A stretch of 64,000 nt of DNA. It comes from Rhodosorus marinus CCMP1338. Lineage: Eukaryota > Plantae > Rhodophyta. Position 1 is the stretch's first letter. Each line of letters opens with the position of its first letter. Shown piece after piece: positions 1-32,230 of this stretch. The notes beneath the pieces are model-generated. The model was not told the origin of the DNA. It made no database searches and worked only from the letters and a program-made list of their open reading frames with translations. The stretch covers positions 62,001 to 126,000 of the forward strand of contig JAMWBK010000013.1 of the NCBI GenBank assembly GCA_029953675.1, written 5' to 3'. Position numbers and translations under genes: made by a program.

Positions 1-3000
1 CCTTTGACCGTTTCTCCGGGCATTTCCTGGCACCGGGACAGATTGCCGGACTTTCTGAGAGGGAGAGCAGCGTGAAGGCGGCGGCCATCCATTGGTTCCG
101 CATTCAACGCATTGAGAGGCTCCTGTTGGCGCGATTTCGTTAGCCATCTTCGTGAAGCAGTGTCGACTTTCTTTGATCGAGAGCGACGGTTGGTACTGCA
201 GTCACGCTACGAAGGGGATTTACCGCGCATGGACGAGCTTGAGGGTTCAAGCGCCACCACTACTCCGTGGAGGGAGGCAATGAACGGAATGTCGGTGGAG
301 GATACTCCAACGACCCTCCTGGACGCCTCGGGCACACTCAGGCGCGCCTCGGCAGTGGAAGAGCCAATACCTTAGTGCGACTACCAGGCAAGCGAGTAAG
401 GACCGACTCCCCAGGGTCTAAGGGGGAGTTCCGCTGGTACGGCTGCGATGTCGCAGCCCCTGGACCTAAAGGGTCACGTTGAGCAGGTGGGAGGGGACTA
501 GGGTGTTTGGAGAACGCAGTTTCGGAGTTGGCTTCAGAGGTGGCTTTCTTCGTTTGGGGGCTCACTTCCTCTGAGAGGCCGGATTCCACCGGTAGTACTG
601 CCTCGCAGGGAGCTGATACAGGATGGGTGTATTTTGGACTTCATATCTGCGGGTTTGGCCCGCAATCTGCGGCATGTGGTTATGTGGAAATTCTTGGGGA
701 TAATGCCGTGTTTGATCCTGGCCCCAGCTCGCACATCAGTGCGAAGCTGACATGTCCCGGACCGGCTCGAAATGTTCCTGCGAGGGGAATTTGAGGTGTT
801 GCAAAGTGTGTATATGACGTCGCTCGAGGCCTCGCGGCGCACGGTCCAGTCCACGGGTGCCTCGCACGTGACGGCTCTGGTACAAAAGTTGGTAGAGGTT
901 GGCGATTTGAGTCGAGCGACCCGGCTTTTGGAGGGACAGGCGCCTGTCCTCTCCTATGATGATCGGCTTGCGGACCCGGTATTCGCCTTACTTCCGTCGT
1001 CCGATGTGGAGTTCCAGCCAAATTTTGCGGCCCTTCTCGACCGATCAGAGTTGGCCCGCCTCCGCATAGATGTGCCGCTTCGCCAGTCCGATTTGGAGGA
1101 ACTTCTCCGTACCTCCCGCCGAGGACGTTCCCCTGGGCCTTCAGGCCTTCGTACGGAATTATTTCAGGCTTTGAGCGAGAGGGGCCGACGTACATTGGTG
1201 AAGATTCTGAATGAGTTTTTAGTTAGTTTTGCAGTGAACTGTACGCATGTCCACACCGTGGGCACACTTACAGCGGGCGCAGCTTTGTTTGATTGCGAAA
1301 GCCGATCACTCGCCTGAACATCCCGTCTCCGGGGCATCGGAATGATTGAGAGCACTCGGAAGTTAGCCGGGAGGTGGGCTATGACCGCGACTACGCCAGC
1401 GTGTTACAGCTTTTTTGGCTCCTCATCAAATGGGAGTAGGGTCTTTCTAGGGAGATACGAACTGATTACCCATGCGATCGAGCTCGTGCGGGCCCCTAAG
1501 CCGACCTGGCTTAGTGGCATCTTGGTTATTGATTTCCGGAACGCTTTCAACAGCGTATCCCGGACGCACGCACTGGAGGTGGTTCGAAGGGTTTTTCCTG
1601 AGACTTTGCCTTTTTTAGCTGGGATCAACGGGGGAACAGGCCTCCCTACATGTCAGAGGGGATTGAAGTTTCTGAAGCATACATAGGGGTACAAAAAGGG
1701 GACCCTTGTGGGCCGGTCCTTCACGCCTGTGCCTTGCAGCTCGCTTTGTTGCAAGTCGCGACCGAGATGGAGGACCTACGCATCTGTGCATATCATGACG
1801 ATGTGACGTTGATGGGTAGTCCTACGGACTTAGATCGGGGGTTGACCGGGATCCAAGCCCTAGCAAGTGAGGTGGGGTCGATAGTCAAACCGGAGAAAAC
1901 AACGCTTTCGCCCAGAGAAGCCCCTCCGGGCAGTCTCCCCGACGCTCTGAGGCATGTTTGCCAACTGAGGGTCTGATGCATCATTGTATAGGGTTGGGGA
2001 GTGAATACTTGGTGCAATCCTCCTGCGAACGAGTTTTCACCCGGAACAGGCAGCTCACAAATGCCATTGAGCGCCTTCCTGATGGTATGCTGCAATCGGC
2101 GCGCCTGATTTCCCGATTCTGTGCGGGTCCCCGGCGCAACTATTGGCTGGAAGTCTTCCACCGCAATTGGGAGGTGGACTGCTGCTAAGGCGGGCGAGGC
2201 GACGCTAACACGTTGGGGCACAGTCCTAGACGAACCACGTGCTTCGGCATCGGCACCTGACAGGGACCTGAGACGGGCTCAGATGGCTCTACCCTTGCGC
2301 CTGGGAGGCTTTGGAGTGGGTGACCCGTCTTGTCTGCTCGACTGCGACGGTAGCCTCCTGGGCCACCGCTCTTCATACCCTTGTGCTATTTAGGTTCTGC
2401 AGTGCCTGAATTCTAAGTTGGGCGCTGACGAACGATGACCCAGTCAACCGTCCGCCGCCGTTACTGCGCATCTATGACGTTCCGCAGTGCCTGCCTTTTA
2501 AGTTGGACGCTGACGAACGATGACCCAGTCAACCTTCCACCGCCGTTACTGCACATCTACAACGGCCTGCAACAGGCGTTTCTTCGGTGCAATGCCGTAC
2601 CGAAAGAGAATCGATTTAAGCTCAGTTCCTGGAAGGAGATATTATGGGGACGCAATGAGTCTGGACTGGAATCTATGGTTAATCGCGTGCTGGCCGACGA
2701 TGGGGAAGCCGGCCCACAGTCACCCGCTACTGATTACCCGGGTATGAGCAGATCGTGGAGCTCCCGCACTGATATGATCCAACATAGCCTCATTTGGGGC
2801 CAAAACAGTGCTGCTCACACAATCTTGCTCAACTCACCACTTACTCCGCCTACCACTGCGGCTCGTCTACAGGGCTTGGGAGGCCAACTATCCCACCTAT
2901 GGCGAACCACTCTACCCTCGTCACGGGGCCAACGCCAGAACGCCTTCCAGTTCCCGACTGCGGCACGCTTCGACTTGGTCTTCCACAGGTCCGTTGGCAT

Positions 3001-3741
3001 TCTAATCGCCCTACCCCACCTATCACCTATGACTAACCACTCTGCCCTCGTCACCGGGCCAACGACTGGGCAACCTTCCAGTTCCGGACTGCGGCACGCA
3101 TCTACTTGGGGTTGCCACAGGCCCCTTACATTCTAATCGCCCTTCCTTCTGCCAAGGATGTGCGAGCCGTATCGACGGATGTGGGTACCATTCTCTGGGC
3201 TCGTGCGGACTACTGCGAGGTCATCTCACGAAGAGACACACGCGCCTGAAATACATCCTGAGCGAACGCTTGACAAGAGTTGGCTACACCGTCGAGGTGG
3301 AACCGGCACTGCCAAGTACACCCTCCGCAACCACCTCTACTCCTTGCATCGCAGATCTCCTGGTCTTGGACGCAGCCGCCAGACGCTCAGCATATGTGGA
3401 TCTCGCTGTCACTTGCCCCTTGTCCGGTACGTATCTCCCTTCTGCCGCTCTCCGCAGGGGGGCAGCAGCTTCTGTACTTGGGCCGCGTGAAGGAAACACG
3501 GTAGGCTGATAGCATGGCCAGTCTTCCCCAGGAAGAGGGTCGGTCTCACAGGTTCCAGCCTTTTATTGTGGAAAGCTTTGGACATCTGGAAAAGTCAAGC
3601 TTGGAGTTGCTACGTAAGTGTTTTACCGAACATCGTGAAGAATATCTGGTACTTCTCCGCCATTTAAGTATCGCACTCTGGCGGTATTCTAGCACCATGC
3701 TCTTCTTCCTAGCCCCTAGTTTCCCTTCACGTTTTGCGTAG
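1..3741 (+). mobile_element. Degenerate RLE-class (CRE-like) non-LTR retrotransposon ORF2, family B; many frameshifts
   Basis: Consecutive ORF fragments carry collinear motifs: SPGPSG, IDFRNAFNSVSR, GVQKGDPCGP, AYHDD, LPLRLGGFG, and the RLE motifs ADLLV..YVDLAVTCP and FQPFIVESFG. Internal tandem duplications near 2390-2570 and 2890-3140. Confidence 0.9.
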
Positions 3742-4167
3742 CGCATCATGCTAGGTTAGTAAAAGCACCAAGGGTACCAGTCCCCATTACAGTGATAGAT
3801 CTACACGTCGTTGGTGGTCTGACGAACAGGTTGTCACGGACCCTTCATTCAGATCATCGTGATTGGAGATACCTAGGGAATTGGAATTATGGGGAAGGTA
3901 AAACCCTACACATTTCACCTCTTTGTGACGGCGCATAGTTGCAGCCAAAGATCCCCGGTGCTCCCCGGCAGCCGGAAAAAAATTCCAATGCCCTTCATCC
4001 TCCGTTCATCTTCTATTCTTGCTTAGCACAAACCCCCAGAGCTTTCCAAGTAATTCCAATTCCTCTTCATCCGTATAAAAAGACAGGTTGTCGCAGTTTC
4101 ACAAGGTGGCACTCCAATCGAAAATGTTTCGGTTTTATGAAATATAAAAAATACGTTTGAAATTAAT

Positions 4168-4336
4168 GAACGAACGAATGGTTTAATCGGAGGCTGAAAA
4201 AAAAACCCCGAGGGGAAAAAAAGACTAAGCGCGGCGAAGTACTCGCGCCTCCAACATCAAAGCGGCATTCATGCGCCACAGCAGGAAACTTAAGCGGGTA
4301 AACAACGATTGAAGACGGTCAGGGCGTTCGCGGAAC
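4168..4336 (-). mobile_element. 5'-truncated family C RLE element (169 bp) with (RTTC)n tail and 6-bp TSD
   Basis: Near-identical to the 3' end of the copies at 6287 and 23.4 kb. ATTAAT at 4162-4167 and 4337-4342. Confidence 0.85.
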
Positions 4337-4360
4337 ATTAATAAAGCAGATTAATTATCT

Positions 4361-5303
4361 CTAACGAGTGACTGGGGGGTTTGAGTTGGTTTTCGGTTGC
4401 GATTGGAGTCGTGTTCGGGTCCGAGAGTGTTCCTCGTTGCAGGCGCATCCTCTCGCTGTCTTTTCCACCGCTTTTCGGGTTTCGTGGTTGGTTATCGTCA
4501 ATCTCCCCCTTTGGGTGTGTTCGATTTTTCGGTCTGAGCCGCTGGTTTGTACGGGATTTTTTGGTCGGGTTCCTTCGTGAGACTCCTGTTCAACACACTC
4601 TTCCGTGATGGCCGGGGTCCCTCCGCGCTCCACTCCTGAGGGTCCGGAGATCCCGCGGGCGGAGGTGTCTACTGAGGGTGGACACAGAATGTCTGTTCGC
4701 GAGGGCCCTTCTCCATGCATGTTGAGTTATAGGGCGCCTCTGGTTACGCAAGTGCGTGCCCTGCTCTCTGCTCTAACAAGCCTTATTACGGCCGCGGACG
4801 ATCGAGGTGTCATTCCTCAGCTCACCCAGAAGCTAGGGGGGCTGGAATCGGGTCTCCTGGCGAGGGAAAATTCAAATTCGGGTGAGAATTTGAATTCCAG
4901 CCGGGTGGCCAAGTTGGCCGGAGACAGTCAACTTCCCCAGGTCAATCAACAACCTGTCCCGGGACAGGCGAGGGCAGCTATGGGATCTGGAGGTGACAAA
5001 GGTGGTTCCGCGGCTAGGGACTCTTCGGAGGGGGGTGCAGAGCTGCCTAATCTTTCGAATATTCCCTCAGTGGGAGCGGACTTTCCCGTCCTGGGCCAGC
5101 CCTCAGGAGGGCGACAGCTCCAGGCCAAGGCGGGGGCACGCGGTGGTCCCAAGGGGGGCCCGTCTTACGTCTCAGTTTTGCGGAAGGGTACCACAGCCTC
5201 ACGGACGGCGGCTATGCTAGGATTTTGCCCTCTCGCGAGCAGCAGGGCCTGCGGCGACTACTTTGCAATTCCTCTAGGTGCGCAACGTCCGGCCCCAGAC
5301 TAC
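4361..5303 (+). mobile_element. GT-rich 5' UTR and N-terminal ORF1 fragment of an RLE element (MAGVPPRS...PSYVSVLR)
   Basis: UTR and start context resemble those at 13.0-13.27 kb (-) and 32.05-32.23 kb (-). The PSY..VL motif is shared with intact ORF1 (PTYAAVS). Confidence 0.7.
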
Positions 5304-5666
5304 ACGGGGCCCCCTTGGGACCACCACGTGCCCCCGCCTTGGCCTGGAGCTGTCGCCCTCCTGAAGGCTGGCCCAGGACGGGAAAGTCCGCTCTCGCTGA
5401 GGGAACGTTCGAAGGATTAGGCAGCTCTGCACCCCTCTCCGAAGAGGCCCCAGCCGCGGAACCACCTTTGTCACCTCCAGATCCCCCAGCTGCCTCGCCT
5501 GTCCCGGGACAGGTTGTTGATTGACCCAGGAAGTTGACTGTCTCCCGCCAACTCGGCCACCCGGCTGGAATTCAAATTCTCACCCGAATTTGAATTTTCC
5601 TTCGCCAGGAGACCCGATTACAGCCCCCCTAGCTTCTGGGTGAGCTGAGGAATGACACCTCGATCG
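4799..5666. repeat. Foldback inverted repeat of ORF1 sequence: arms 4799-5163 and 5304-5666, loop about 140 bp
   Basis: Arms are reverse complements along their whole length, roughly 90-95% identical by eye. Confidence 0.95.
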
Positions 5667-6286
5667 CAAGCAATGCGCAAATGTAGATAAGATTCCTCAT
5701 CCTGGCACCCCTCTCTATCCCTCCCAATTCACCGCTGTTTCTCTACACTCTTCACCTGCCTCACAGCATATCTCGATCATCTCAGCCACCCATTCTAGCC
5801 AAGTACCTCATAACCAAGCTGGCTATTTATACTGTTAACCCCCCCCGGCGCTCACGGAACTAACTCTCGCCAACGCGTGGAGGGAACAAAAGCAAATCGC
5901 GGCACTCGAAGTCGTTGCTAACGAAGCTGGAAATGCTCTTTTTTTTGGTTTCCGTTATGGTTGCCCTTCACGGCGGCATGAATGAACTTGTTTATGAATG
6001 AATGTATTGATTCGCTCGACCGAAAAAAAAAAGCCTGAGGGGACAACATTGTATGGAGTGGACATAAACCTTTCCCTCCATACAATTAATTGTAAAAAAC
6101 CGCCATATCACCGGTGCTTTGATGCTCCTAGAGGCGAGCGATCTTCGCTCTGCGGGCAGCTGAGTCTTTTTCTCTCCTAGGGTTTTTTTTTCTTTCAGTC
6201 TACGATTGAACAAATTCATTCAGATCACGCACATAACTACGCGCATCACTCCAGCATCTAGATTGATGAAAATGTCCTCCAGTATC

Positions 6287-7116
6287 GAACGAATGGTTTA
6301 ATCGGAGGCTGAAAAAAAAACCCCGAGGGGAAAAAAAGACTAAGCGCGGCGAAGTACTCGCGCCTCCAACATCAAAGCGGCATTCATGCGCCACAGCAGG
6401 AAACTTAAGCGGGTAAACAACGATTGAAGACGGTCAGGGCGTTCGCGGAACAACTCCCGAAGCCAGCGAGAACCAACAGAGTCCATGAACCCAAAGCACT
6501 CAATGATCAGGGGTACCAAGCGATGTGCTAATGCCGAAGCACGAACACCAGGGGAAGACAAAGCCCCCGCGTATTTGATCTCTTTGCGGCGTCTCATGCT
6601 GGTGGCGGCAGATCCACGGCGCTCCCCCGCAGCCGGTAGATAACGACTAGCTTGAGGGTTAGGAACAGCAAGATCAACGTATGTGGTACGGCGGCTGTCG
6701 TCACAGGTGATCACCAGGTCGGCTACACGGCGTTCATCATTTTGAAAGTCCGCGACGGGTAAAGGTTTCTCACGTTCGATTTCCAGACCGGCTTGCCGGA
6801 CTATAGGCCGAAGTTCCCCGTATAACAGGTTCAAGATCCGTGTATGGCGGCGGGTTCGAGCACCTTTCACCGCCGGGCAACTAGCGAGCAGGTGGGCGCC
6901 AAAATCTGCGTTGTCTTCAGTCTGAGAGCAGAGAGGGCACGACGAACCCATCTCGTACGGCCAAGGGGGCTGATGTAAGCCGAGGTATAAGCGCAGTGAA
7001 GTACGCACTTCGAAATCCGACAGTGTGAGTGGCGGAAAGGCTGGTACGGTCATGAGCCACTGAGAGCTAAGAACCCCTCCAAGACTACGTAGGCGGGCGC
7101 GAGCGCGAGAAGAGAA
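6287..7116 (-). mobile_element. 5'-truncated family C RLE element (830 bp; CCHC zinc finger + RLE) with 8-bp TSD
   Basis: ORF 6340-7053 contains CPLC..HLLASC..RRH, RVADLV, YVDLAV, KEIKY, LVPLIIECFG. CCAGTATC at 6279-6286 and 7117-7124. The empty site is visible in the other IR arm and at 7738-7750. Confidence 0.95.
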
Positions 7117-9760
7117 CCAGTATCAAGGCAGGTTTCATACCGGAAAAAAAATCGAAACAGTTCAAGAAACACATATTTTCGAGCACATATCTTTCCGGGC
7201 TTTTAGCTAACAAGATCAAATGTGTTTTCCGTTCTATCAAGGGTAGCAACTTGATGTCGCATCTAAATTTAGATACTTTTGTTTACAAATATTTTTCCGG
7301 CGGAGTTCATGTTTGGCAAGTGGCTTGTCAGCCCATTCACTTCGCTTTGCTCAGGTTTTGCACTGCGTTCTGTGGGGGGAGGTACTCCCGCGCGTTGTTT
7401 TTTGTTTTGTTGTTTTGATGAATGTGAGTTGTGTTCACTCGCACCGCAAAAGACGACTGTAACTGCCTAGTACACCTTTAGCATCTGGTTTGATGAAATT
7501 TTATCCAGCTCATATATTTTCAAAAGTTTTGCTTTCTCCAATTCAAAACAACAGAGCGGTGTTGAATAAATGGTTTGGTTTGGTGGTTTAATGAATGTGA
7601 AATACGGCATAACTGCTTAGTACACCTTCCGCAACCACCTCTCCTTGTTGCATCGCAGATCTCCCGGTATCGGACGCAGCCGACATATGTTCAGCATATG
7701 TATACTGCCTTCAGCATCTGGATTGATGAAATGTCCTCCAGTATCAAAGCAGGTTTCATACCGGAAAAAAAATCGCTTTTTTTTTCAGTTCGTATATATT
7801 CGAAAGTTTTGCTTTTTTCTAATTCAAAACACCTGAACAGTGTTCAATGAATGGTTTGGGGCGTCTATTTAATAGTGGTTTTTCTGGTATTTATGCGGCT
7901 TTTCTAACATAGGTGGTTTAACGAATGTGAATTGTGCTTATTCGCCGCAGAAAAGACGACTATAACTGCTTAGTGCACCTTCCGCAGCCACCTCTCCATG
8001 TCGCATCGCAGATCTCCTGGTATCGGACGCAGCCGACACGTGCTCAGCATATGTGGACGTTGCTGTCACTTGCCCCGTGTCCGGTACCTGTCTCCGTTCT
8101 GCCCCTCTCCGGCCCTGGCGTTTTGAATTGGACAAACCAAAACTTTCGAAAATATATGAACTGTTCCGAATTGTTTTCCGGTATGAAACCTGCTTTGATG
8201 CTGTTCGTTCGTTCGATGCTGGAAGACATTTCATTAATCCAGAAACCATTCATTCAATCCAGATGCTGAAGGTGTTACTAGGCAGTTACAGTCGTCTTTT
8301 CTGGTGCGAATAAAAAAGGTGCTCCGCAAGAGAAAACTGTTGAAAATCTGAGCAAAGCGCGCTAAACGGGCGTGACAAGCCACTTGCCAAACTTAAACTC
8401 CTCCAGAAAAATATTTGAAAACAAACTTCTAAAATTTAGATGCAAAACCAAGTTGTTACCCTTCATAGAACAGATACATTTATTTGATCTTATTAGCCAA
8501 AAAGGCTGAGAAGATTCTTGCTCGAAAATATGTGAACCGTTGCGAATTTTTTTTCTGGTATGAAACCTGCTTTTTGATGCTGGAGGACATTTCATCAATC
8601 CAGATGCTGGAATGATGCGTGTAGTGTGTGTGGATCTGAATGAATTTGTATCAATCTTAGACTGAAAGAAAAAATGTCTTGAGGGGAGAAAAAGACTCAG
8701 CTGCCCGCAGAGCGAAGATCGCTCGCCTCTAACATCAAAGCACCCGTGATATGGCGTTTCTTACAATTAATTGTATGGAGGGATCTTCGCTCTGCTGCCC
8801 GCAGAGCGAAAATCGCTCGCCTCTAACATTAGAGCGCGGGTGATATGGCGTTTCCTACAATTAATTGTAAGGAACGATGGTGCGCCAAGAGCATGGCCAG
8901 TTTTCCCCGGGAAGAGGGCCGGTCTCGCAGGTTCCAGCCTTCCATTGTGGAAACCTTTGGGCATCTGGAAAATTCAAGCTTTGGAGTGGCTACGTAAGCG
9001 CTTTCCCAAACATCCTGAAGAACATCTGGTGCTCCTCCGTGCGATTTTTTTTCCGGTATGAAACCTGCTTTGATGCTGGAGAAAATTTCATCAAACCAGA
9101 TGCTAAAGGTGTACTAGGCAGTTACAGTCGCCTTTTCCGGTGCGAGTGGACACAACTCACATTCATCAAAGCACCAAAACCAAAACAACGCGCGGGAGTA
9201 CCTCCCACAGAACGCAGTGCAAAATCTGAGCAAAGCGAAGTGAACGGGCTGACAAGCCACTTACCAAACATGAACTCCTCCGGAAAAATATTTGTAAACA
9301 AAAGCATCTAAATTTAGATGCGAAATCAAGTTGCTACCCTTGATGGAACGGAAACTACATTTGATCTTGTAGCCAAAAGCCCGGGAAGATATGGTGTTCT
9401 CGAAAACATGTGTTTCTTGAACTGTTTCGAATTTTTTTCCGGTATGAAACATGCTTTTATACTGGAGGACATTTCATCAATGCAGATGCTGGAGTGATGC
9501 GCGTAGTTATGTGCTATGTGCGTGATCTGTTCAATCGTAGACTGAAACAAAAAAAAAAACGAGGGGAGAAAAAGACTCAGCTGCCCGCAGAGCGAAGATC
9601 GCTCGCCTCTAGGAGCATCGAAGCACCGGTGATATGGCGTTTTTTCACGATTAATTGTATGGAGGGAAGGGTTTATGTCCACTCCATACAATGTTGTCCC
9701 CTCAGCTGGTTTTTTTTCAGTCGAGCGAATCAACACATTCGTTCATAAACAAGTTCATTC
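7117..9760. repeat. Composite array of reshuffled RLE 3'-end remnants (about 65-bp and about 600-bp units, both orientations)
   Basis: The unit ggtatgaaacctgctttgatgctggaggac (MKPALMLE, versus family C MNAALMLE) recurs about 6 times, interleaved with family B endonuclease fragments. Confidence 0.8.
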
Positions 9761-10042
9761 ATGCCGCCGTGAAGGGCAACCATAACGGAAACCAAAAAAA
9801 AAAGCATTTCCAGCTTCGTTAGCAACGACTTCGAGTTCCGCGATTTGCTTTTGTCCCTCCACGCGTTGGCGAGAGTCAGTTCCGTGAGCGCCGGGGGGGG
9901 GGGGTTTACAGTATAAACAGCCAGCTTGATTTTGAGGTACTTGGCTAGAATGGGTGGCTGAGATGATCGAGATATGCTGTGAGGCAGGCGAAGAGTGTAG
10001 AGAAACAGTGGTGAATTGGGAGGGATAGAGAGGGGTGCCAGG

Positions 10043-12013
10043 ATGAGGAATCTTATCTACATTTGCGCGTTGCTTGCTATTTTTAGTGGAGTATGGGCAA
10101 CAGAGATGAGTTATTTCTGGCCCAGGGGTCGTACTGAGGCCCGTCAGCACACCAGTCAAATGGTTACTATGTGGGAACTGAGAGATGGAAATTTGGCTGG
10201 GATCTTTCTTGCAGGCTTTAATCCAAGCAGGTGCGTGTATCAGGAGTGGGACAGGGGCAGTCTTCAGACCCTGCGCTCTATCCCTGAAATTACCGGGTGC
10301 ACGTTCGGAGCTCCATTACGAGGCGGTGGTTTGTTGATGGCCTTGTCGTCCAATGCAATTATGAAATGGGACTCGAACCTCGAGCTCGCCTGGGCGCAGA
10401 CGTATGTGGACGGAGAGCTAGTGGGTTTGAAGTCTATCATTGAACTCAACGACGGGTCGATCCTAGTCCTGGCAACGTCCCTTGTGTCAAAGTTGGATTC
10501 GGATGGAAACGTGCTTTGGAGAAAACCGTTCGCCCCAGAAAGGCCGGCTGCCGCTGGCACGCAAATGGCAGAAGTCGAAGAACTTAGCGTTGTCGTGGTA
10601 GCTCTCGACGGAAACAAAGTAGTGCGTGCCTACAAGTTTGATGCAGACGGGAACTTGCTGTGGGAGAAAAAACTATCAAACCGACGTACAAAATTTTCTC
10701 AGATAGTTCCTGTTCTCGCTTCGGATGGCAACTACATCGTTGCTCTTTCAACCGATAACCTTGAGAATAGAAAGGACAAGGAAGTAACAGCCTTCAAGTT
10801 GAGCCCTGATGGAAGCACCCTCTGGGCGAGGACGGTGAGAGTTCCGCAAACTCTTGGTTCTGGGGAACGACTAGGAGGATTGGTTGCAGAAGACGATGGA
10901 GGCGCCGTACTGGTAGCGACTTCTACTAGCGGCAGAGTCGGGGAAAAAACGTCCCCTTATCGTGAACAAGGAGGAAGAGAAATATGGCTTGTGAAGCTTA
11001 GCTGTAATGGGGAGGTTGTTTGGGATCTGTCAGCAGGAATGAGTCCTTATTGGGAAATCTCTTACGCGCGCAAAACTATGGGAGGGTATATCGTAGGCAC
11101 GCCGACCCCTGTTGAGATAGTGACCAATGAGCTACGTAAAGTAACGCGAAATTCAAGGCTGAAACCGGGTGATGTCATCTCGATATTTTCAAGAGAAGCG
11201 GGTAAGTACCTTGCGGTCGACACCGATTCAGACAGAGATCTCGTGAAAGCGAACCGGGACGAGGATGGAATAGCATCTCAGTGGATGATTTTGAAGGATC
11301 CCTCACAAGCCGAGAGTCGTCTGTATCTCCGCTCACTGATTAATGGAAAACGAGCTTTGCTCACTCGAACCTCCTCGGATGTGGAGATGAGGGCATCGGC
11401 CGATCACAATTCCGCCCCAATGATGCGGAACGAGTTCGAGGTGAAGTACCTTGGGAACAGCACGGTTGCTATTCAGTCCAGCATCCGATCTTTTGGGTAC
11501 TTGAGACCTGAGGGGGGATCCGAACTGGGCAAGATCATCGCAACGGAATCCAAGGCATCGGAACGCGAGATGGAGTTGACTCTTATACACCAACGGAACC
11601 CTCTCGTACGCAGCGATATTATTCTCCGGCTGAGCTCTAAGAACGTCCTGATTGAGGCCAATGAACAGGGTCTTTTGAAGGCGACGAACACCGTTCTAGA
11701 CGAATCGAATATGGACGCCTATACTTTCACGGTCGTGGGGCTTGGGAAGTATGGTCGAGTCGGTCTAATCTCGAAGGCGTCTGGAAGATATCTGTTTTAT
11801 GACCATAAACAGGGATGGAGGATGAATGCTGATGGAACCTCTGGAAATAACATCTATTGGAGACTTGCCGTCTATGCCGACGGATATACCGCCTTGTACC
11901 CTAACCGTCTTACTGCGTCCTGCGTTATGGTAACCCCGGAAGGAGAGGTCAGCGCCTCTCCCACGGCAGGAGATTTTGAATCATGTAAGATGATGGTCGC
12001 ACAGGTAGTCTAG
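10043..12013 (+). CDS. Secreted protein: signal peptide + beta-propeller-like repeats + fascin-like beta-trefoil C-terminus; intronless
   Basis: ATG at 10043 with hydrophobic leader. D.DG..LW.K repeats, then fascin-like strands (GKYLAVD, YLRSLING, SGRYLFYD). Domain calls are by eye. Confidence 0.75.
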   Translation: MRNLIYICALLAIFSGVWATEMSYFWPRGRTEARQHTSQMVTMWELRDGNLAGIFLAGFNPSRCVYQEWDRGSLQTLRSIPEITGCTFGAPLRGGGLLMALSSNAIMKWDSNLELAWAQTYVDGELVGLKSIIELNDGSILVLATSLVSKLDSDGNVLWRKPFAPERPAAAGTQMAEVEELSVVVVALDGNKVVRAYKFDADGNLLWEKKLSNRRTKFSQIVPVLASDGNYIVALSTDNLENRKDKEVTAFKLSPDGSTLWARTVRVPQTLGSGERLGGLVAEDDGGAVLVATSTSGRVGEKTSPYREQGGREIWLVKLSCNGEVVWDLSAGMSPYWEISYARKTMGGYIVGTPTPVEIVTNELRKVTRNSRLKPGDVISIFSREAGKYLAVDTDSDRDLVKANRDEDGIASQWMILKDPSQAESRLYLRSLINGKRALLTRTSSDVEMRASADHNSAPMMRNEFEVKYLGNSTVAIQSSIRSFGYLRPEGGSELGKIIATESKASEREMELTLIHQRNPLVRSDIILRLSSKNVLIEANEQGLLKATNTVLDESNMDAYTFTVVGLGKYGRVGLISKASGRYLFYDHKQGWRMNADGTSGNNIYWRLAVYADGYTALYPNRLTASCVMVTPEGEVSASPTAGDFESCKMMVAQVV

Positions 12014-20549: not shown

Positions 20550-22450
20550 AGGACTACCTTTATTTGGTAGTGGTTCGACTAACTTGGGCTTGGCCGGACG
20601 TTTACCTGTGCTGTCTGCGGGCAACCACACGACGTACGTGGAATCCAGCGGCTCCAACACTGCCGGACATCGTCTGGGATGAGAACTAAACGACATGAGC
20701 TCAAGCCTATGGAAATGTTTTACTGAGCATCCTGTTGTATACTTGGAGCTTTTGCGGCGTTTAAGTGTCCCTCTGTGGCGAGGCGATTTTCGAGTAGCAT
20801 GCTTGCCGAGGCGCGCCATAGGTGCCTGGGTTTCACGCTTCCCTACCTAGTTCTTAGTTCCTTTTCATGACTTGCGTAGCGCTTCAGGCTATGCTAATAA
20901 AGTCAGTAAAGCCACCATCTAAAGGAAATCTGGTGTTCTTATCGATCGTGAAGGTGCGCAGTCGCGCAGTCCAAACCCGACTTCTCCACGTGACCAAAGC
21001 TTTCCACAATGAAAGGCTGGAACCAGTGGGAGCGACCCTCTGCGCGAGGCAGACTGGCCATATACTCTCAGCATACCGTCGCTTTACTCGGCTTTACTAG
21101 GCTTTATTGGCATAGCCTAAAACGCTAAGCAAGCCGTGAAAAGGAACTAAGAACTAGGTAGGGAAGCGTGCAAACCCAGGCGCCGTTTTTCAAAGATACT
21201 CGGCTTTACTCGTTTACCGGCTTTATTGGCTTTATTAGCAACTGGCTTTATTAGCAGAGCCTACAGCGCTACGCAAACCGTGAAAAGGAACTAAGAGCTA
21301 GGTAGGGAAGCGTGCAAGCCCAAGCGCTTTACTAGCATACCCTGAAGCGCTACGCAAGGCATGAAAGTTAAGAACTAGGGAAAGAAGTAGCATTACTAGC
21401 GTACCTAAACCGCGACATCCTATTCCGACTGTACAAAATTCATTCATTTTCTTTGGAGGGGTGGCCGCTCCTTGCCTTTAGACAGACTTTATCTTTCGGA
21501 TGGTGGCTTTACTTACATAGCCTGAACCGCTGCGCACTAGTCAGACTAAACAAAAAATTCGTTCATTTGGATGGGTGGCCGCTCCTTTCCTTTAGATAGA
21601 CTTTGTCTTTGAGATGGATGGATTTACTTGTTGTAAAACGCGCTGACTTGATCCGACCTTTATTTCAAACCTTCGTTATGAGAACTACGACCTAAATGTA
21701 CAAGCTTATTGGAATCCTTTCGGCAATATCTGATGAAACTTCGCGTTCCAAAATCGTCGGAGAAAGAGGGTTCGACACGATCAATTCCGCGTTCGTGAAA
21801 CTCCTTCCCGGTAACCGTTCTATGCGATTCGATGGTGAAGCTCTCACCAACACGCAATAGATACAATCCACTTAAGAACTCACCCGTCTCAAGAATTTCA
21901 AGTTTTGCCTTTACTGCAAATCTCTCTTCTTCCTACTTTTCCATCTATCCCCTCAGTAGTGTCTATCAATACTCGGACTTGGGATATTATACCAAGTCCA
22001 TATGTCGCTGATCGACGTTCGCTATGATTCATCATGCATATAGAGAAGCCACTAAATCGAGAGTGGCAGTCTGCCACACCCAGAAATTATCACTATTCAA
22101 TGCCGGAGCCAGAATTCCAACATCACTGGTTTTTATTGGCTTGGCCAAAAGCGCTACGCAAGGCGTGAAAAGGAACTAAGAACTAGGTAGGGAAGCGTGC
22201 AAACCCAGGCGCCGATGGCGCGCCTCGGCAAGCATGCTGCTAGCATATCGGCACAGAGAGACACTTAAACGGCGTAGTGTTCCAAGTATTTGGCTCAGCG
22301 AAACATTTCCGCAACCACTCCAAACCCGTCTTCGCCACGTGAGCAAAGCTTTCCACAATGAAAAGGCTGGAACTGGTGGGAAACCGACCCTCTGCGCGGG
22401 GCAGACTGGCCATACTCTCAGCATACCGTCGTTCCTAACTTGCACCCGAT
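20550..22450. mobile_element. Cluster of family B 3'-end fragments in both orientations, with (A[A/G]TAAAGCC)n tails
   Basis: cttccctacctagttcttagttccttttca recurs at 20838(+), 21140, 21290, 22170 and 24970 (-). Confidence 0.8.
21642..21930. repeat. Dispersed repeat of about 290 bp, second copy at 38168-38455
   Basis: Direct collinear similarity by eye. No protein family recognised. Confidence 0.85.
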
Positions 22451-22599
22451 GCTATCTCAAATTCGGAAGTTAAGCTCGAACGGGCCTTGGAGAGTACTGA
22501 GGTCAGGAATTTTCGGGAACGCCAGGTGACGTACCTTTTTGGTCTCCATAACCGTGATATAATTATTTAGGATTCCCTCTTGGAGCCCATCAAGACTGA

Positions 22600-23408: not shown

Positions 23409-24323
23409 CGAACGAATGGTTTAATCGGAGGCTGAAAAAAAAAAACCCCGAGGGGAAAAAAAGACTAAGCGCGGCGAAGTACTCGCGCCTCCAACATCAA
23501 AGCGGCATTCATGCGCCACAGCAGGAAACTTAAGCGGGTAAACAACGATTGAAGACGGTCAGGGCGTTCGCGGAACAACTCCCGAAGCCAGCGAGAACCA
23601 ACAGAGTCCATGAACCCAAAGCACTCAATGATCAGGGGTACCAAGCGATGTGCTAGTGCCGAAGCACGAACACCAGGGGAAGACAAAGCCCCCGCGTATT
23701 TGATCTCTTTGCGGCGTCTCATTCTGGCGGCGGCAGATCCACGGCGCTCCCCCGCAGCCGGGAGATAACGACTAGCTTGAGGGTTAGGAACAGCAAGATC
23801 AACGTATGTGGTACGGCGGCTGTCGTCACAGGTGATCACCAGGTCGGCTACACGGCGTTCATCATTTTGAAAGTCCGCGACGGGTAAAGGTTTCTCACGT
23901 TCGATTTCCAGACCGGCTTGCCGAGCTATAGGCCGAAGTTCCCGGTATAACAGGTTCAAGATCCGTGTGTGGCGGCGGGTTGGAGCACCTTTCACCGCCG
24001 GGCAACTAGCGAGCAGGTGGGCGCCAAAATCTGCGTTGTCTTCAGTCTGAGAGCAGAGAGGGCACGACGAACCCATCTCGTACGGCCAAGGGGGCTGATG
24101 TAAGCCGAGGTATAAGCGCAGTGAAGTACGCACTTCGAAATCCGACAGTGTGAGTGGCGGAAAGGCTGGTACGGTCATGAGCCACTGAGAGCTAATAACC
24201 CCTCCAAGACTACGTAGGCGGGCGCGAGCGCGAGAAGATGAGACCATCTGCGCGAGGAGTCGGCCATATGCAGCACGGTGCAAGTCCCAAGAAAGAATAT
24301 TTTGCAGCGCATCCGTGCGTGCG
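23409..24323 (-). mobile_element. 5'-truncated family C RLE element (about 0.9 kb), near-identical to the 6287 copy
   Basis: ORF 23465-24283 and the same 3' UTR and tail. No TSD found. Confidence 0.95.
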
Positions 24324-26039: not shown

Positions 26040-26391
26040 AATACTTTAGTAGGGGCGGTCAGTAGTCACTGGCGAGAGGTCAAAGGCCGGATGAACTTCT
26101 ATCAGAGCTGCCTCAGCGGAGAGGAAGTCCTCTAACACCGGGCGGAGGACAGGAGGACATGAATGCCTGTTTACTCGTCACAGGGTCGGCTTATCAACTC
26201 CTTACCTCGCTTGTCGCCACCCCTGAGCCTCAGCTCTCTGCCCTTGCGGACATGAAACTGACTCATGCCCACAACTCATTGTTCGTTGACTTTGATCGCT
26301 TAGTCTGGGGTTACGTTAGTCTGGGGTTATCTGGGGTTATTGGATAAGGTTCGAAATTAAGTTTGTAGGTTTGGTTCGCCTGGGGTAAAAT

Positions 26392-27975
26392 ATGCCAAAC
26401 ACTGGCACTTCCCCTTCGTTTGGGGAGGGGAATTCGAAGAATACCGGTGCAATGAGCGGAATGCTGCCTGCCTCTCCAATTGCTGAACGAGAGGACGGGC
26501 ATGGGCCACATGATGGACTACAAGCGACTACTTTACGCCCAAAAGAACCGTGCCAGGAGGGGAGTCGGACAGAGCCTTCTACGTCATCCTCTCCCGCTAA
26601 CACGTTCCTCCACCAACTTCGAAGCTACGATCAGTGCTATCACGCCCTCGGAATTGGGGAGCAGGACATCGCGAACTTCTACAAAGCAGTCTTCAATCTC
26701 TACTCGCGAATTAACAGTACCACAGAGATACATAATGTCACCAGCCGCCTCACGGAACTTGCACAGAAGCCCCACATGTGGCAAGCTTCTGCACAGACTT
26801 CGAATCCCTCGGGAGCTTCGGCGCATCACCGGCCGACGGCGGTGGTCAATCAACTTGCGGCCGGAACGGGCTTCAATCAAGTTCCGGTCGGGACAGGTGT
26901 CCCTGCGGGTGTCCGGTTTGAGACGGCTTTCCCGGCCCTTGGGAATGACACCCCCAGACCCACCTACGCGGCGGTTTCGGCGGTAGAAGTACCAGAGAAC
27001 GGTGTAGAGACACCCATCCGCACCATGCGAAGGCCTGGGCCGCAGACGCAACATGCCGCCCTGAAGCAGTTACACGCCACAGTGGGAGGGGCCAGCTGGG
27101 GCCCTGAGACCACGCCAGTGCTTGTTACCCTCCGAAATATCCGTCCCCCACGACAGGATGAGGTGGCTGCTTCTGACTTCACTACGGTCCTCTGCCGGGC
27201 GTTGGGCATTCCCGGCTCGTATGTGGCGCATTTGGACTTTATCTTTTCACACGTGAGCCTCGTGTGCCACCCTGATGCAATTCCTCTTCTCCAAAGCGCA
27301 ATCAGCCGGGGAGTGTTCCGGACTGGGATTTTCGGATCCTTTACCATGCGACACCCCGATCGACAGGTGAGCCTGTACACCGGGCACGGTTTAGAGGCGG
27401 ATAACCTGCTGGGGTTCAACGAGCGGCAACGACTCGCCGGCGGAGATGTCAGGGCTCAAACGCTGAGACGAGCGATCGAGCAGATCATACGCATCCGCGC
27501 GCGGCTGAGCCGTCGACATCTCTCGTTTACAACTCTCGCCCGAGTGCACGAGATGCTGGACCAACGGCTTGAAAAGTTACAAGCCCTTCAACAGCAACCT
27601 GCGGTATCCAGGGAGAGCGCGGAACCCCTAACGACTGCAGCCGCACCAAACGCAGCCGCTGAAGCCTCGTCGTCTCCGGACGATGCACAGGCAGCCTGTG
27701 GGACTGTTGCCACTCAGGGTGACTCCGGTGGAACATCCCAAGTACCGCAGGATGTGGAAGAAGAGGACAATCCCCATGCGGAACTCTCGTGCAACTTGCC
27801 GGAACCTCCTCAACTTAAGCGCTCGCGCCGGTCTGCCAACGGATCTAGCACGGATGCAGAAATGACACCAGCTCCCCTCGACCCCACACCGAGCGAGAAT
27901 GGACTACAACCTGAAACTGCAGCCAATACAAACCCGTCGGTTCAGCAGGAAGCGCAGGACAACGAGCAATCATAA
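26392..27975 (+). CDS. Retrotransposon ORF1 (527 aa; putative coiled-coil + RRM-like nucleic-acid-binding region; no CCHC knuckle seen)
   Basis: Long ORF directly upstream of RT; homologous relics elsewhere in the window. The RRM-like call is inference. Confidence 0.8.
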   Translation: MPNTGTSPSFGEGNSKNTGAMSGMLPASPIAEREDGHGPHDGLQATTLRPKEPCQEGSRTEPSTSSSPANTFLHQLRSYDQCYHALGIGEQDIANFYKAVFNLYSRINSTTEIHNVTSRLTELAQKPHMWQASAQTSNPSGASAHHRPTAVVNQLAAGTGFNQVPVGTGVPAGVRFETAFPALGNDTPRPTYAAVSAVEVPENGVETPIRTMRRPGPQTQHAALKQLHATVGGASWGPETTPVLVTLRNIRPPRQDEVAASDFTTVLCRALGIPGSYVAHLDFIFSHVSLVCHPDAIPLLQSAISRGVFRTGIFGSFTMRHPDRQVSLYTGHGLEADNLLGFNERQRLAGGDVRAQTLRRAIEQIIRIRARLSRRHLSFTTLARVHEMLDQRLEKLQALQQQPAVSRESAEPLTTAAAPNAAAEASSSPDDAQAACGTVATQGDSGGTSQVPQDVEEEDNPHAELSCNLPEPPQLKRSRRSANGSSTDAEMTPAPLDPTPSENGLQPETAANTNPSVQQEAQDNEQS

Positions 27976-30900
27976 TGCCGTCCAGACGCAGGGGACGTAA
28001 ACGCCCACGAGAAGAGCCTCTGTTCTTCTCTGACCGGGAGGCCTGGATTTGCCGCTGGAACGCTTTCGTAGCTGAGATCACGGAGGAGGGGAGGCATTGG
28101 ACGCGCATCACACATTGCCCGGTGCCCACACGACGCTTCGTGCCCCGAGCACACGTTTCTACATGGAGCCGGCTTCTTCGGGCTGCCCTCGAGCTTTCTC
28201 TGGACGCGACAGCACCTCCATTAGCGAGCCTGCTTCTCGTCGGCCTTCCGGGTCTGGTCCTGGGCCACTCCACCCTTGACACAGGGGTACAGGTCGCACA
28301 TGTACTAGAAGGAGAGTTCCAGCGGGTCTGGACGGCCCTTGAGGAGAAAGCCGCCTCAATGAAACCCCCACCTACACCACACGGTGCCGAAGACGTTCGT
28401 CGACGAGTCGATGGCCGCCGCAAACAAGCACTTAAACTAGCACGACTCGGCCGCCTCTCGGATGCTGCAAGAAGACTCGAGGCCACCGAAATGGCGCCTT
28501 TCACAGCGGCTACCTGGCGGCAACTACAACAGCTCTTTCCGAGCCCCGCCAGTGTGGATTCACCGGTGGAGATTGTGGAAGCCCTCCAAGGCCTACTCAC
28601 GACGGACAACGACACACTGAAGAGGCGGTGGGATCCAAAAACGGCTGCCGACGAAGGCCTCCTCTCAATCGTGGCACGACTACCTCAAGGGACGAGCCCT
28701 GGACCGAGTGGAATGCGCGCGGAACATTTGCAAGGGGCGAACCAACAGACTCAGGTAGCACTGATTCGGGTCTTGCGCCAACTCGCCACCGCGCCCGGGC
28801 GATTCTCACCCCTTCTGCTACGAGCCTTGCGTAGCAGTAGACTTCTGCCTTTCTCGAAGCCAGCACAGGGGGGTAACTCCCAGGCCAAGGCAGGGATCCG
28901 CCCAATAGGCGTGCCGGAGGTCCTACGCAAAGTGGCAACTCAGTGGGGGCTGCGAGCGGTGATGGACCGGGTCCGCGAGCTGTTGGTGCCGTTGCAGCTG
29001 AGAATCGGGGTCAGCGGTGGCTGTGAACGGTCACTGCACGCCATCCAGGCCCACCTGTCATGTGAACCAGACTCGGTTGCACTTCGACTGGACCTCGAGA
29101 ACGCCTTTAACCGCATTGATAGGCGAATTGCCAAGAAACTGGTGGCCCAGCACTTCCCTGAGCTCACAGCGGTGTATAGGCTCGGATATGGAGGCGATGG
29201 GGAAACACCGACGACTTGTGGATGGCGGACGACGCAAGAAGACAACCACCTGCACAAGGACAGACTGACGCTGCAAGCAGAAACCGGAGTACAACAAGGC
29301 GACCCTTTAGGTCCGGTGCTACATGCGCTCTCCCTGGCCCCTTTTCTCAAGGCACTCAGCAACAAGTTTCAGGGAGTCACGATCGTCGCCATCCATGACG
29401 ACATCACTCTGGTCGGCGCATTGCCCATATTGAAGGAGGCTCTCCAATGGGGACAGACCCTGCTACCGTGCCTTGGAGCCCGCCTGCAGCTCAGCAAATG
29501 CAGCCTTTATGGTCGATCCCTCACCACTACACGCTTGGTGAACCGTGCGATTCCCGGCGTGCAAGTGACTAGGGAAGGCCTCACAATCCACTCCATCCCC
29601 ATCGGCACTCGGCAGTACATCGAGCACGAGTGTAGACGGCTGCAGAACAAACACGAGACGCTTTTCAAGGAGATTTCGAGCCTGCCAACCGAGGAACTGC
29701 CTATCCAGCTTGCGCTTTACAGGTATTGCGCTGAAACGAGGTTGGATTACACCTTGCGATGCCTTGCCTACCCGTTTGGACGAGCTCTGGCCAGGGAAGC
29801 GGACAGTATGAGCAGATACCACTTAGAGGTCTTGTTTGGTGGCCTCTGCACGACGGCCTTGGTCGAGGATGAGCTGATACACCCGGTCAACGAGCAGATT
29901 TCGTTGCCCTGCCGATGGGGCGGATTGGGGTTCGCGACCCGTGCAAGAATACAGCCGATTGCGTTCTTCTCGGCCTGGGCGCAGACCCTGAGAGACCATG
30001 CGGGTCAGTGGCCCTATATAACGGAGGTGGAGCGACAGGTCAGGCAAGGTGGCGACATACACATCAGCCACCTAGGCCGACTGCAGGTGTCAACGGAGAC
30101 GATCGGTGAGCAAATCCGCGCGTCTAGTCGTGCTATAGAGCGGAGACTGTGCCCAGACACGCCGCCGCGGATCCGGAGACTGGCCAAGCTGCCCGAATTG
30201 AGAGACGAAGCCGCACCTGAAGTAGCGGACTCCCCTCGCGATTGGAACCATGGTTCAATACAACAAACCCTCTCTAGGGAGGCACACCATCGCGCGTTCC
30301 AACGTTTGGTCGGCAACGAGGGCGTTTCGCATGAACACCGTGCAAGAATCCGATCGGCGGCCGGCTCGGGTTCGGGGGTATGGCTGCGGGAACTACCGTT
30401 GCTAGAGCCGAGAAAGCTGGACTCACAGGAATTGCAGGTAAATGTTCGACAACTGCTGGGGCTGCCGATTCCGGGGTTGCGGACAACGGAGCAGTGCACC
30501 AGTTGCCGTAGGAAACATGGCCCAAATGGGGTGCAACGATTTCAACACTGTCCAACATCGACGGGACTATGGCAGAGACGGCACGACGAGCTCTGTACGG
30601 AGCTAGGGAGATGGCTCAACCGATGGAATTTTCTTGACATACAGCAAGAACCGCAGAGGTATTTTGAGAATTACCAGCTGCGACCAGATATCGTGGCGAC
30701 CCATCCAAAGACCTTTCAAAAGTACGCGATCGATGTGACGGTGATTTCACCGCTACAGGAAAAGTACATAAGGCGTGGCAGTGCAGAAAACGGGTATGCA
30801 GCGAAACTGGCGGAGAACTACAAGCTCGCGCACTATAAAGAGGCGATGAGTGTGGAAAAGCCCGAGGAGAAGTTCATCCCGATCGCGATAGAGACCTTTG

Positions 30901-31112
30901 GGCGGAGCGGGAGGTTGACGCAAGACTTTTTGCGGGACAGTTGTAAACACTTGTTGCATCGAGATGAGGAGCTGAGGGATGCACGATCCCAGTTAAACAG
31001 GATCCTATGGCAGGGCAACGCGGCGATTGCGCTTGGCGCTCTACGTGCGGACCAGTTGGAGAACCCACTGGTTCCTGTTTTTTCTTTTGAACGTAGCATG
31101 AGACCCCGGTAG
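27975..31112 (+). CDS. ORF2: reverse transcriptase + CCHC-type zinc finger + restriction-like endonuclease (1045 aa)
   Basis: RT: SPGPSG, IRPIGVPEVLRK, LDLENAFN, GVQQGDPLGP, IHDD, LPCRWGGLG. Zinc finger: CTSC..HC..RRHD. RLE: RPDIV, AIDVTV, KLAHY, FIPIAIETFG. Confidence 0.95.
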   Translation: MPSRRRGRKRPREEPLFFSDREAWICRWNAFVAEITEEGRHWTRITHCPVPTRRFVPRAHVSTWSRLLRAALELSLDATAPPLASLLLVGLPGLVLGHSTLDTGVQVAHVLEGEFQRVWTALEEKAASMKPPPTPHGAEDVRRRVDGRRKQALKLARLGRLSDAARRLEATEMAPFTAATWRQLQQLFPSPASVDSPVEIVEALQGLLTTDNDTLKRRWDPKTAADEGLLSIVARLPQGTSPGPSGMRAEHLQGANQQTQVALIRVLRQLATAPGRFSPLLLRALRSSRLLPFSKPAQGGNSQAKAGIRPIGVPEVLRKVATQWGLRAVMDRVRELLVPLQLRIGVSGGCERSLHAIQAHLSCEPDSVALRLDLENAFNRIDRRIAKKLVAQHFPELTAVYRLGYGGDGETPTTCGWRTTQEDNHLHKDRLTLQAETGVQQGDPLGPVLHALSLAPFLKALSNKFQGVTIVAIHDDITLVGALPILKEALQWGQTLLPCLGARLQLSKCSLYGRSLTTTRLVNRAIPGVQVTREGLTIHSIPIGTRQYIEHECRRLQNKHETLFKEISSLPTEELPIQLALYRYCAETRLDYTLRCLAYPFGRALAREADSMSRYHLEVLFGGLCTTALVEDELIHPVNEQISLPCRWGGLGFATRARIQPIAFFSAWAQTLRDHAGQWPYITEVERQVRQGGDIHISHLGRLQVSTETIGEQIRASSRAIERRLCPDTPPRIRRLAKLPELRDEAAPEVADSPRDWNHGSIQQTLSREAHHRAFQRLVGNEGVSHEHRARIRSAAGSGSGVWLRELPLLEPRKLDSQELQVNVRQLLGLPIPGLRTTEQCTSCRRKHGPNGVQRFQHCPTSTGLWQRRHDELCTELGRWLNRWNFLDIQQEPQRYFENYQLRPDIVATHPKTFQKYAIDVTVISPLQEKYIRRGSAENGYAAKLAENYKLAHYKEAMSVEKPEEKFIPIAIETFGRSGRLTQDFLRDSCKHLLHRDEELRDARSQLNRILWQGNAAIALGALRADQLENPLVPVFSFERSMRPR

Positions 31113-31169: not shown

Positions 31170-32230
31170 GGCGACTGCCCAATAAAGCTCACGGTTACGT
31201 TGACGGGGAAAACGGGCAAAGAGGCTTGAAAGTCGAGCCGCATGCCTTTGCAGTGCAATGGCGAGAGCTTTCGTGCAGGGGTGGCTCTGTAGCGCCGACG
31301 GGGGAACCCAACCTGCGTCGAAGCGGTCAAATTCAACAAGCAATGAGCTGCGGGAACGAGTCAGTATCATGTTCGCAAGGGCAGAGGGCTGAGGTTCAGG
31401 GGTGGCGACAAGCGAGGTAATGAATTGATAAGTCGACTCTGTGACGAGTAAACAGGCGTGAGGCTAAGTGGAATCCACGTAGAGGAACTCAGATGGAGCT
31501 ACCCCAAGTGAGGTGGCCATCGTATCAAGGAATTCAGCGTAGAGAGCTGGCGAGGGAATTCAGGGTTTTTCACGGGGAAACCTTATACGCACCATGGCCG
31601 TCATCCGTTGTTCAGAGGAGCCCCGCGAAGGACCTGGGAGTAGGAGGGCCGAGAGACACTCGCAGGAGCAAGATTCAGCCCCAAGCAAAGCCCTGGGGGC
31701 TTTTGGCCGGAGAGTAGGGGAGGTACAGCAGAATTGGGGATGGTCTGGGCGGAGCGCTCTGGACGACCGAAGGCAGGGCGGGGTGCAGAGCTCCCCCAAG
31801 CAGTAGCGGTATGGGGGAGGACGGAGAACGCGGTACTAGGAAAGTTCTCCAGATAAGCTGTTAACGTCGGCAGGGGGTCCTCCTGGGAACCAACGACAAG
31901 AGGGCTTGTCAGTTTGGAGACAAGTCGTGCCGCGACGACGCGTCGCGGCAGTTACTGAGAGTGGCATGGGCGCTGAATGCACACCCACGGGCAGCTCCAC
32001 GAGCTGAGAGACGGCAGCACCAGTCACCGGAAGAGGTGGGGAAGCCCCAGCCATAATAAAAGAGTGTGACGAGGAGAAGTTTCAGCACAAAACCCCCACA
32101 AGAACGGGCGAATACCCAATACAAAGTACCCCGAAACCTCCAACAACCCCATCGGAAGGAGAGAAAGCCCGCAGACAAGCCACAACACACCCCAAAAACC
32201 TGAGGGAAAGACGACAGAGGGTAGCGCCTC
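31170..32230 (-). mobile_element. Degenerate 5' UTR + ORF1 of a family B/C-type element
   Basis: RPSYSQVLR and VRIRFPRE..DTMATSLGVAPSEFLYVD..HACLLV align to intact ORF1 LRNIRPPR..VLCRALGIPGSYVAHLDF.FSHVSLV. Confidence 0.7.

Follow-up and report, generated by a model that had tools for sequence, protein, structure and literature searches.

The locus described here lies in a 64-kb stretch of DNA from the red alga Rhodosorus marinus CCMP1338 (the window hereafter), located on contig JAMWBK010000013.1 of the nuclear genome GCA_029953675.1, a Nanopore/NextDenovo assembly of 31 Mb with 15% repeats (PMC10250338). It is an outer palindrome whose arms measure about 1.0 kb and whose spacer measures 1,558 bp; a foldback of retrotransposon ORF1 sequence is joined to its left end. 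All positions refer to the window, and adding 62,000 gives the position in the contig record; on the contig, the hairpin occupies 66,799-67,666, its junction with the palindrome is at 67,666, and the copied start codon of the neighboring host gene is at 67,700. The features are listed below with their strand.

1-3700, plus: degenerate family B element whose coding sequence is split over several frames, with the ORF1 C-terminal part (3-428), RT (460-2149) and RLE (3033-3491)
4171-4337, minus: 3' end of a family A element, 167 bp, with the last 37 ORF2 codons and the 3' UTR (tblastn match to the RLE C-terminus; recent insertion)
4338-4607, plus: presumed family B 5' UTR, reaching from the family A fragment to the ORF1 ATG (4608)
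4608-5303, plus: ORF-X, assigned as the native N-terminal part of ORF1, 232 codons, open, cut off at about 5303 (HMMER and contig L004)
4799-5163, plus: left foldback arm, native (BLAST self-match and base-by-base alignment)
5164-5303, plus: loop of 140 nt, native ORF1 sequence rather than filler (colinear with contigs L003 and L004)
5304-5666, minus: right foldback arm, an inverted duplicate of 4799-5163 (self-match; relatives not colinear here)
5629-5700, minus: fusion ORF of 23 codons (MRNLIYICALLAIEVSFLSSPRS, then a stop), by translation 11.7 signal-peptide codons followed by ORF1 sequence out of frame
5666-6285, minus: inverted copy of 9459-10077, the host-gene start and upstream sequence (self-match, 5.1% substitutions)
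6286-7116, minus: 5'-truncated family A element, 831 bp, 98.3% identical to 23409-24246 (1.2% divergence)
7117-7512, plus: continuation of the left outer arm, 92% identical to the reverse complement of 9071-9465, with a U2 pseudogene at 7187-7390
7513-9070: spacer of the outer palindrome, with a U2 copy (8314-8517, minus), repeated spacer units and RLE pieces
9071-10077, plus: right (original) outer arm, with a U2 copy (9193-9392, minus), an RLE 3' relic (9531-9664), unique upstream sequence (9668-10042) and the gene start
10043-12013, plus: host gene of 656 aa with a signal peptide and a ricin-B-lectin-like region (called gene in GCA_029953675.1)
26392-31112, plus: apparently intact RLE non-LTR retrotransposon, with ORF1 of 527 aa (26392-27975) and ORF2 of 1045 aa (27975-31112)

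Retrotransposon families in the window

The identity of the folded sequence was established through relatives of ORF-X on other contigs. A word-indexed protein search with ORF-X gave zero matches, and no assembly of the collection has ORF-X among its called proteins; likewise, the 271-aa ORF that spans the hairpin is on record in none of the assemblies of the collection looked up. An exhaustive HMMER search, in turn, found as relatives the proteins P0001 (E = 2.7e-20), P0002 (for which there is no entry on record) and P0003, and a search with the last of these led to protein P0004 on the 3,099-bp Logan contig L004. One strand of this contig carries a homologue of ORF-X (g1), the C-terminal part of an ORF1 (g2), and an ORF2 with RT motifs (g3). 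The first matches the window at 4593-5218 (E = 5e-33), with protein homology beginning at 4593, and the other two match 3-428 and 460-1925 at 47-55% amino-acid identity. The ORF2 of this contig is also 31% identical to that of the intact element at 27975-31112 (E = 3e-42). No similarity was detected by tblastn and BLASTP between ORF-X and the rest of the window, including the ORF1 of the intact element (26392-27975), nor between that ORF1 and P0003. Since ORF-X is unlike the intact-element ORF1 in the window, its identity as ORF1 is taken from the other contigs. By this homology, the folded sequence is the N-terminal half of ORF1 from an R2-like RLE family, which we call family B. An earlier note on this DNA had named it as a retrotransposon ORF1, and the gene order on L004, in which the ORF-X homologue is followed by the ORF1 C-terminal part and an RT-bearing ORF2, bears this out.

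The degenerate element at 1-3700 is the only other family B copy in the window, and its 5' part lies beyond the window edge. An unrelated Logan contig (L002:915-1629, run SRR32518362) has the same order as window positions 3033-4900, in which an RLE ORF2 3' end in sense orientation is followed by a family-A-like 3' end in antisense and then by the ORF1 5' region; this common order may reflect a tandem-array spacer, an insertion hotspot or coincidence. A search of the literature on the two SRA runs that carry ORF1 relatives found nothing.

Family A is represented by three 5'-truncated copies, all on the minus strand (4171-4337, 6286-7116 and 23409-24310), which have a common 3' terminus and differ from each other by 0-1.2%. 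The shortest of them is 100% identical to 6286-6452 and, apart from a change in poly-A length, identical to 23409-23577; its flanks, TTAATGAA and TTAATAAA, resemble a target-site duplication. It lies just upstream of the 5' end of the ORF1 element, in sense orientation for read-through from the minus strand. Given the low divergence of the three copies, their differing flanks and the 7-bp target-site duplication of one of them (6286-7116), this family has been recently active and is not strictly site-specific.

In the apparently intact element, the ORF2 start overlaps the ORF1 stop by one base (ATGA). The RT of its ORF2 matches the solved R2 protein 9nl2 (E = 3e-5), and the C-terminus contains C..C..H..C (CCHC), RPDIV, IDVTV and K, which is the signature of a PD..D/ExK endonuclease. 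No entry for this ORF2 is on record. The element is flanked by 153-nt inverted repeats (26165-26317 and 31305-31457) that are 85% complementary. The view of the earlier note that the RLE family survives here only as relics holds within the window for family B, the donor of the folded ORF1; it does not extend to the intact element or to the recent family A copies, which belong to other families. As these other RLE elements are intact or recently inserted, not all RLE sequences in the window are relics.

The foldback and the outer palindrome

The two foldback arms (4799-5163 and the reverse complement of 5304-5666) are 94.2% identical by BLAST over 365 alignment columns (E ~1e-159), and the loop between them is 5164-5303, so the arms of about 365 bp and the loop of 140 bp proposed earlier are both confirmed. 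Over 363 aligned positions, the arms differ by 19 substitutions (14 transitions and 5 transversions) and 2 one-base indels. The foldback junction lies within 5304-5311 (ACGGGGCC), a stretch of 8 nt that can be assigned to either side. Colinearity between the window and contigs L003 and L004 begins at about 4765-4820 and ends at about 5300-5311. Because both follow the left arm and the loop and then diverge fully, we regard the left arm and loop as native and the right arm as the duplicate. When the minus strand from 5700 to 4780 was folded as RNA, the model predicted one long stem with -839 kcal/mol, compared with -384 +/- 9 for shuffled sequences (z = -52). According to the mismatch positions, the stem has perfect runs of 46, 46, 38, 34 and 32 bp, and with such long perfect runs retained it would be an acceptable dsRNA substrate, if made.

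On its right side, the foldback directly abuts an inverted copy of the start of the host gene at 10043. The product of this gene has a homologue among MMETSP transcripts (P0006) that is 53% identical to it and carries PF14200, and a comparison of the 656-aa protein with PDB sequences gave no match. Counting gaps, 5666-6285 is 93.4% identical to the reverse complement of 9459-10077. The fusion point at 5666, the position of the copied ATG at 5700 on the minus strand, and the microhomology of 1 bp stated in the earlier note all agree with the alignment, in which 1 base is common under a strict count and 4/5 when imperfect matches are allowed. The copy had been described as containing the first 12 codons of the gene; it contains 11 complete codons and only 2 nt of the twelfth (~11.7 codons). 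It had also been placed between the junction and position 6000. The copy is there, and it extends further, up to 6285 and then, beyond the 831-bp insertion, over 7117-7512.

The copied block keeps 586 bp upstream of the host-gene start, and the reading of this sequence as the upstream region of the host gene stands only in part. Sequence unique to the gene is confined to 9668-10042, copied at 5701-6072, and the rest of the block (6073-6285) consists of spacer from the U2 array together with an RLE 3' relic. Most of what lies upstream of the gene is thus a U2 pseudogene unit with retroelement 3' relics: the unit is about 880 bp long (8343-8783 resembles 9221-9667) and carries RLE 3' ends, such as that at 9531-9664. 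Three U2 snRNA copies were found with Rfam scores of 51.9-66.2 bits, at 7187-7390 (plus; 51.9 bits), 8314-8517 (minus) and 9193-9392 (minus). They are in a tandem-plus-inverted arrangement upstream of gene 10043, and positions 1-192 of the model are matched without interruption. All three are off-consensus in the stretch that binds the branch point, and they therefore look like pseudogenes or diverged copies.

The association of RLE elements with U2 copies recalls Utopia, a group of RLE retrotransposons that target U2 snRNA genes and insert at nucleotide 38/39 inside U2 (PMC4640811). As in Utopia, RLE elements are physically associated with U2 copies here, with several families and tandem arrangements in one array. 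Membership in this group was rejected, since none of the U2 copies is interrupted over positions 1-192 and the RLE 3' ends are found some 70-140 bp upstream of these copies. Elsewhere in the window, a weak 5S rRNA-like match at 22413-22534 on the plus strand (30.7 bits, under the gathering score of 38; E = 0.015) adjoins RLE fragments at 22344-22436 and may be another small-RNA pseudogene associated with RLE elements.

Taken as a whole, the inverted duplication pairs 5666-7512 with 9071-10077 over about 1.0 kb, and its left arm is interrupted by the later insertion of the 831-bp family A element. This insertion has a 7-bp target-site duplication, CCAGTAT (6279-6285 and 7117-7123), and the right arm is uninterrupted at the corresponding 9459-9465; the element entered the left outer arm after the duplication. 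There are thus three inverted segments, the right arm of the hairpin and the two pieces of the outer palindrome with the family A insertion between them; the hairpin arm directly abuts the palindrome at 5666. The spacer between the outer arms contains short tandem duplications (7411-7701 resembles 7914-8054, and 7499-7578 resembles 7779-7859). It also contains sense pieces of the family B RLE region at 7612-7701 and 7965-8111, both resembling 3308-3454, and a piece of the family B 3' region at 8890-9039, resembling 3511-3659, which indicates layered rearrangements.

Fold-back chimeras occur in Nanopore data. The assembly is built on such reads, and a chimeric palindromic read in it could in principle imitate the structure described above. 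The arms, however, differ by 5% substitutions and only 2 indels, and a ratio of 19 to 2 argues against read or assembly error; the outer arms differ by 5-6%. Moreover, the loop of 140 nt is asymmetric and made up of native ORF1 sequence. The retroelement with its target-site duplication in only one outer arm also shows that the palindrome is real and old. On these three grounds (substitution differences, asymmetric native loop, one-arm insertion with target-site duplication) we rejected an assembly artefact, which we consider extremely unlikely.

Origin of the inverted segments

The substitution divergence of the three inverted segments is nearly uniform: 5.2 +/- 1.2% for the hairpin arms, 5.1 +/- 0.9% for 5666-6285, and 5.9 +/- 1.2% for 7117-7512. 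The ratio of transitions to transversions is somewhat higher in the hairpin arms (14:5) than in the outer arms (31:23), a difference too small for interpretation, and CpG transitions (5/19 in the hairpin, 8/31 in outer segment A, 1/23 in outer segment B) give no clear methylation-type signature. When L003 and L004 served as outgroups to polarize the differences between the arms, the outcome was too ambiguous for use.

The native ORF1 piece has a 5' end and no 3' end; a product of target-primed reverse transcription would be truncated the other way round, and a DNA rearrangement is therefore required. An origin by retrotransposition (TPRT or twin priming) was accordingly discarded, also because the inverted part is duplicated rather than simply inverted sequence.

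Structures produced by template switching (MMBIR/FoSTeS, DUP-TRP/INV-DUP-type) have nested inverted segments, spacers, short microhomology at the junctions, loss of intervening sequence, and a single age. The locus resembles them in having spacers (140 nt and 1,558 nt) and exact boundaries on its nested inverted repeats, short junction microhomology (at 5666, 1 bp by the strict count; at 5304-5311, an ambiguous stretch of up to 8 nt), inverted segments of one age, and loss of intervening sequence. It differs in that the mechanism is here deduced only from scars and in that strict microhomology amounts to just 1 bp at one of the junctions. Our preferred interpretation, to which we assign a probability of roughly 60%, is that, in a region where transposable elements and U2 pseudogenes abound, one fold-back/template-switching rearrangement at the DNA level (MMBIR/FoSTeS-like) left this locus as its scar.

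The proposed course of events is as follows. A family B RLE retrotransposon would have been broken within ORF1 at about 5303. In a first switch, at 5303/5304, the opposite strand would have been copied backwards for 365 bp, from 5163 to 4799. A second switch, at 5666, would have jumped to codon 12 of the host gene, from where about 1.0 kb of upstream sequence would have been copied backwards, from 10077 to 9071. In a third switch, at 7512/7513, the copy of 9071 would have rejoined the chromosome at 7513, and the remainder of the family B ORF1 and ORF2 would have been lost in the rearrangement. All three inverted segments would then have decayed by about 5% at an equal and apparently neutral rate, with the family A insertions coming later.

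A single event is most likely, both it and its mechanism being read from the scars that it would have left. Equal divergence cannot prove a single event, as two events close in time would look alike. Two independent events would mean that the ORF1 foldback arose first or last and that a separate inverted duplication of the gene upstream region came to abut it by chance. The two junctions are indeed unlike in character, one with 1 bp of microhomology and the other with up to 8 nt of ambiguity, and the many other inverted and tandem repeats in the region point to frequent rearrangement. Against this, the three divergences are statistically indistinguishable and the inverted blocks are directly contiguous with nothing between them, so that we regard two events as rather unlikely. 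The spacer at 7513-9070 is itself a patchwork, which obscures the ancestral arrangement.

For the copied gene start, the single rearrangement that we favor has a direct consequence. The earlier note had treated it as the separate capture of a host promoter, a proposal that we do not retain, as the copied sequence is one end of the inverted duplication of about 1.0 kb. The outer duplication (5.1-5.9%) and the hairpin arms (5.2%) have diverged to an equal extent, and the layout is therefore better explained as a by-product of one complex rearrangement than as the specific capture of a promoter. Such a neutral origin may be compatible with later use of the locus as a source of dsRNA, and the foldback has the orientation relative to the copied gene start that a silencer needs.

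The hairpin as a possible silencing trigger

If transcription began in the copied upstream region on the minus strand, the RNA would first contain the 23-codon ORF, followed by ORF1 in sense, the loop, ORF1 in antisense and the 5' UTR, also in antisense, and would end at the sense family A 3' end (4337-4171). The earlier claim that the copied gene start is oriented so that a minus-strand transcript would contain the hairpin is therefore structurally sound; the fusion itself is out of frame and stops after 23 codons. Because the element's own 5' end (4338-4607) is present, a plus-strand transcript would form the same hairpin, and a host promoter would not be required. As judged from its layout, either strand of the locus could yield an imperfect hairpin RNA of 363 bp, as a side effect of the rearrangement.

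The arrangement invites comparison with Mu killer of maize, a partial inverted duplication of a transposon gene in an orientation that allows read-through from flanking gene sequence (PMC3440606). Two defining features of Mu killer, the inverted duplication of coding sequence and the read-through orientation, are present here, and the likeness is one of structure only. Mu killer has been proven genetically to silence MuDR and forms a hairpin of about 4 kb, whereas the arms of the present foldback are 363 bp long and 5% diverged. Furthermore, the present locus concerns an RLE non-LTR retrotransposon in a red alga, its "flanking gene" is itself a duplicated fragment, and it is known from sequence alone. 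In maize, silencing of Ac/Ds is triggered by inverted duplications that result from alternative transposition (bioRxiv 10.1101/2020.01.07.897926). As in this case and in endogenous hairpin-RNA loci, a rearrangement has here accidentally made an inverted repeat of a transposable element that could feed an siRNA pathway; those loci are backed by small-RNA and silencing data, and ours by its nucleotide sequence.

A functional silencer of the Mu-killer type would use the copied promoter to produce the ORF1 foldback RNA, whose siRNAs would silence family B in trans. Several features fit this proposal, namely a partial inverted duplication of a transposable-element gene, its correctly oriented fusion to a copy of a real gene's 5' end with 586 bp of upstream sequence kept, the very stable hairpin predicted by folding, and the sense family A 3' end at 4337-4171, which could supply 3'-end signals. 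In the window, family B is otherwise visible only as one degenerate copy, which also fits. On the other hand, the hairpin arms decay at the rate of the non-hairpin palindrome, and the promoter copy is accounted for by the larger duplication. None of the 16-mers in 4799-5666 recurs outside the hairpin within the 64-kb window, which thus shows no target, and the intact and the recently active RLE families have no nucleotide similarity to the arms. The absence of ORF-X from the called proteins of every assembly of the collection also weighs against this proposal, and we consider such a silencer improbable. The broader claim of a working trans-silencer that shuts down the R2-like RLE family via siRNAs, whether driven by the duplicated host promoter or by the element's own 5' end, appears to us slightly more doubtful still. 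The structure is genuine and could plausibly be a Mu killer analogue; most likely, it is a rearrangement scar.

RNAi biology is poorly known in red algae. A literature search for Rhodosorus together with Argonaute found nothing, and the small-RNA papers on red algae that were consulted contained no statement on AGO or Dicer for the R. marinus lineage. To our knowledge, no natural trigger of the Mu killer type has been described before in Rhodophyta. If the hairpin is transcribed and diced, the locus would provide a testable entry to the question of how red algae start the silencing of a non-LTR retrotransposon, and the Mu killer principle would reach past plants and past DNA transposons. In the more likely case that the locus is a scar and nothing more, it is still a clean natural case of a multi-step fold-back rearrangement dated by the equal divergence of its parts, and it shows that layouts combining a hairpin with a promoter can arise by accident.
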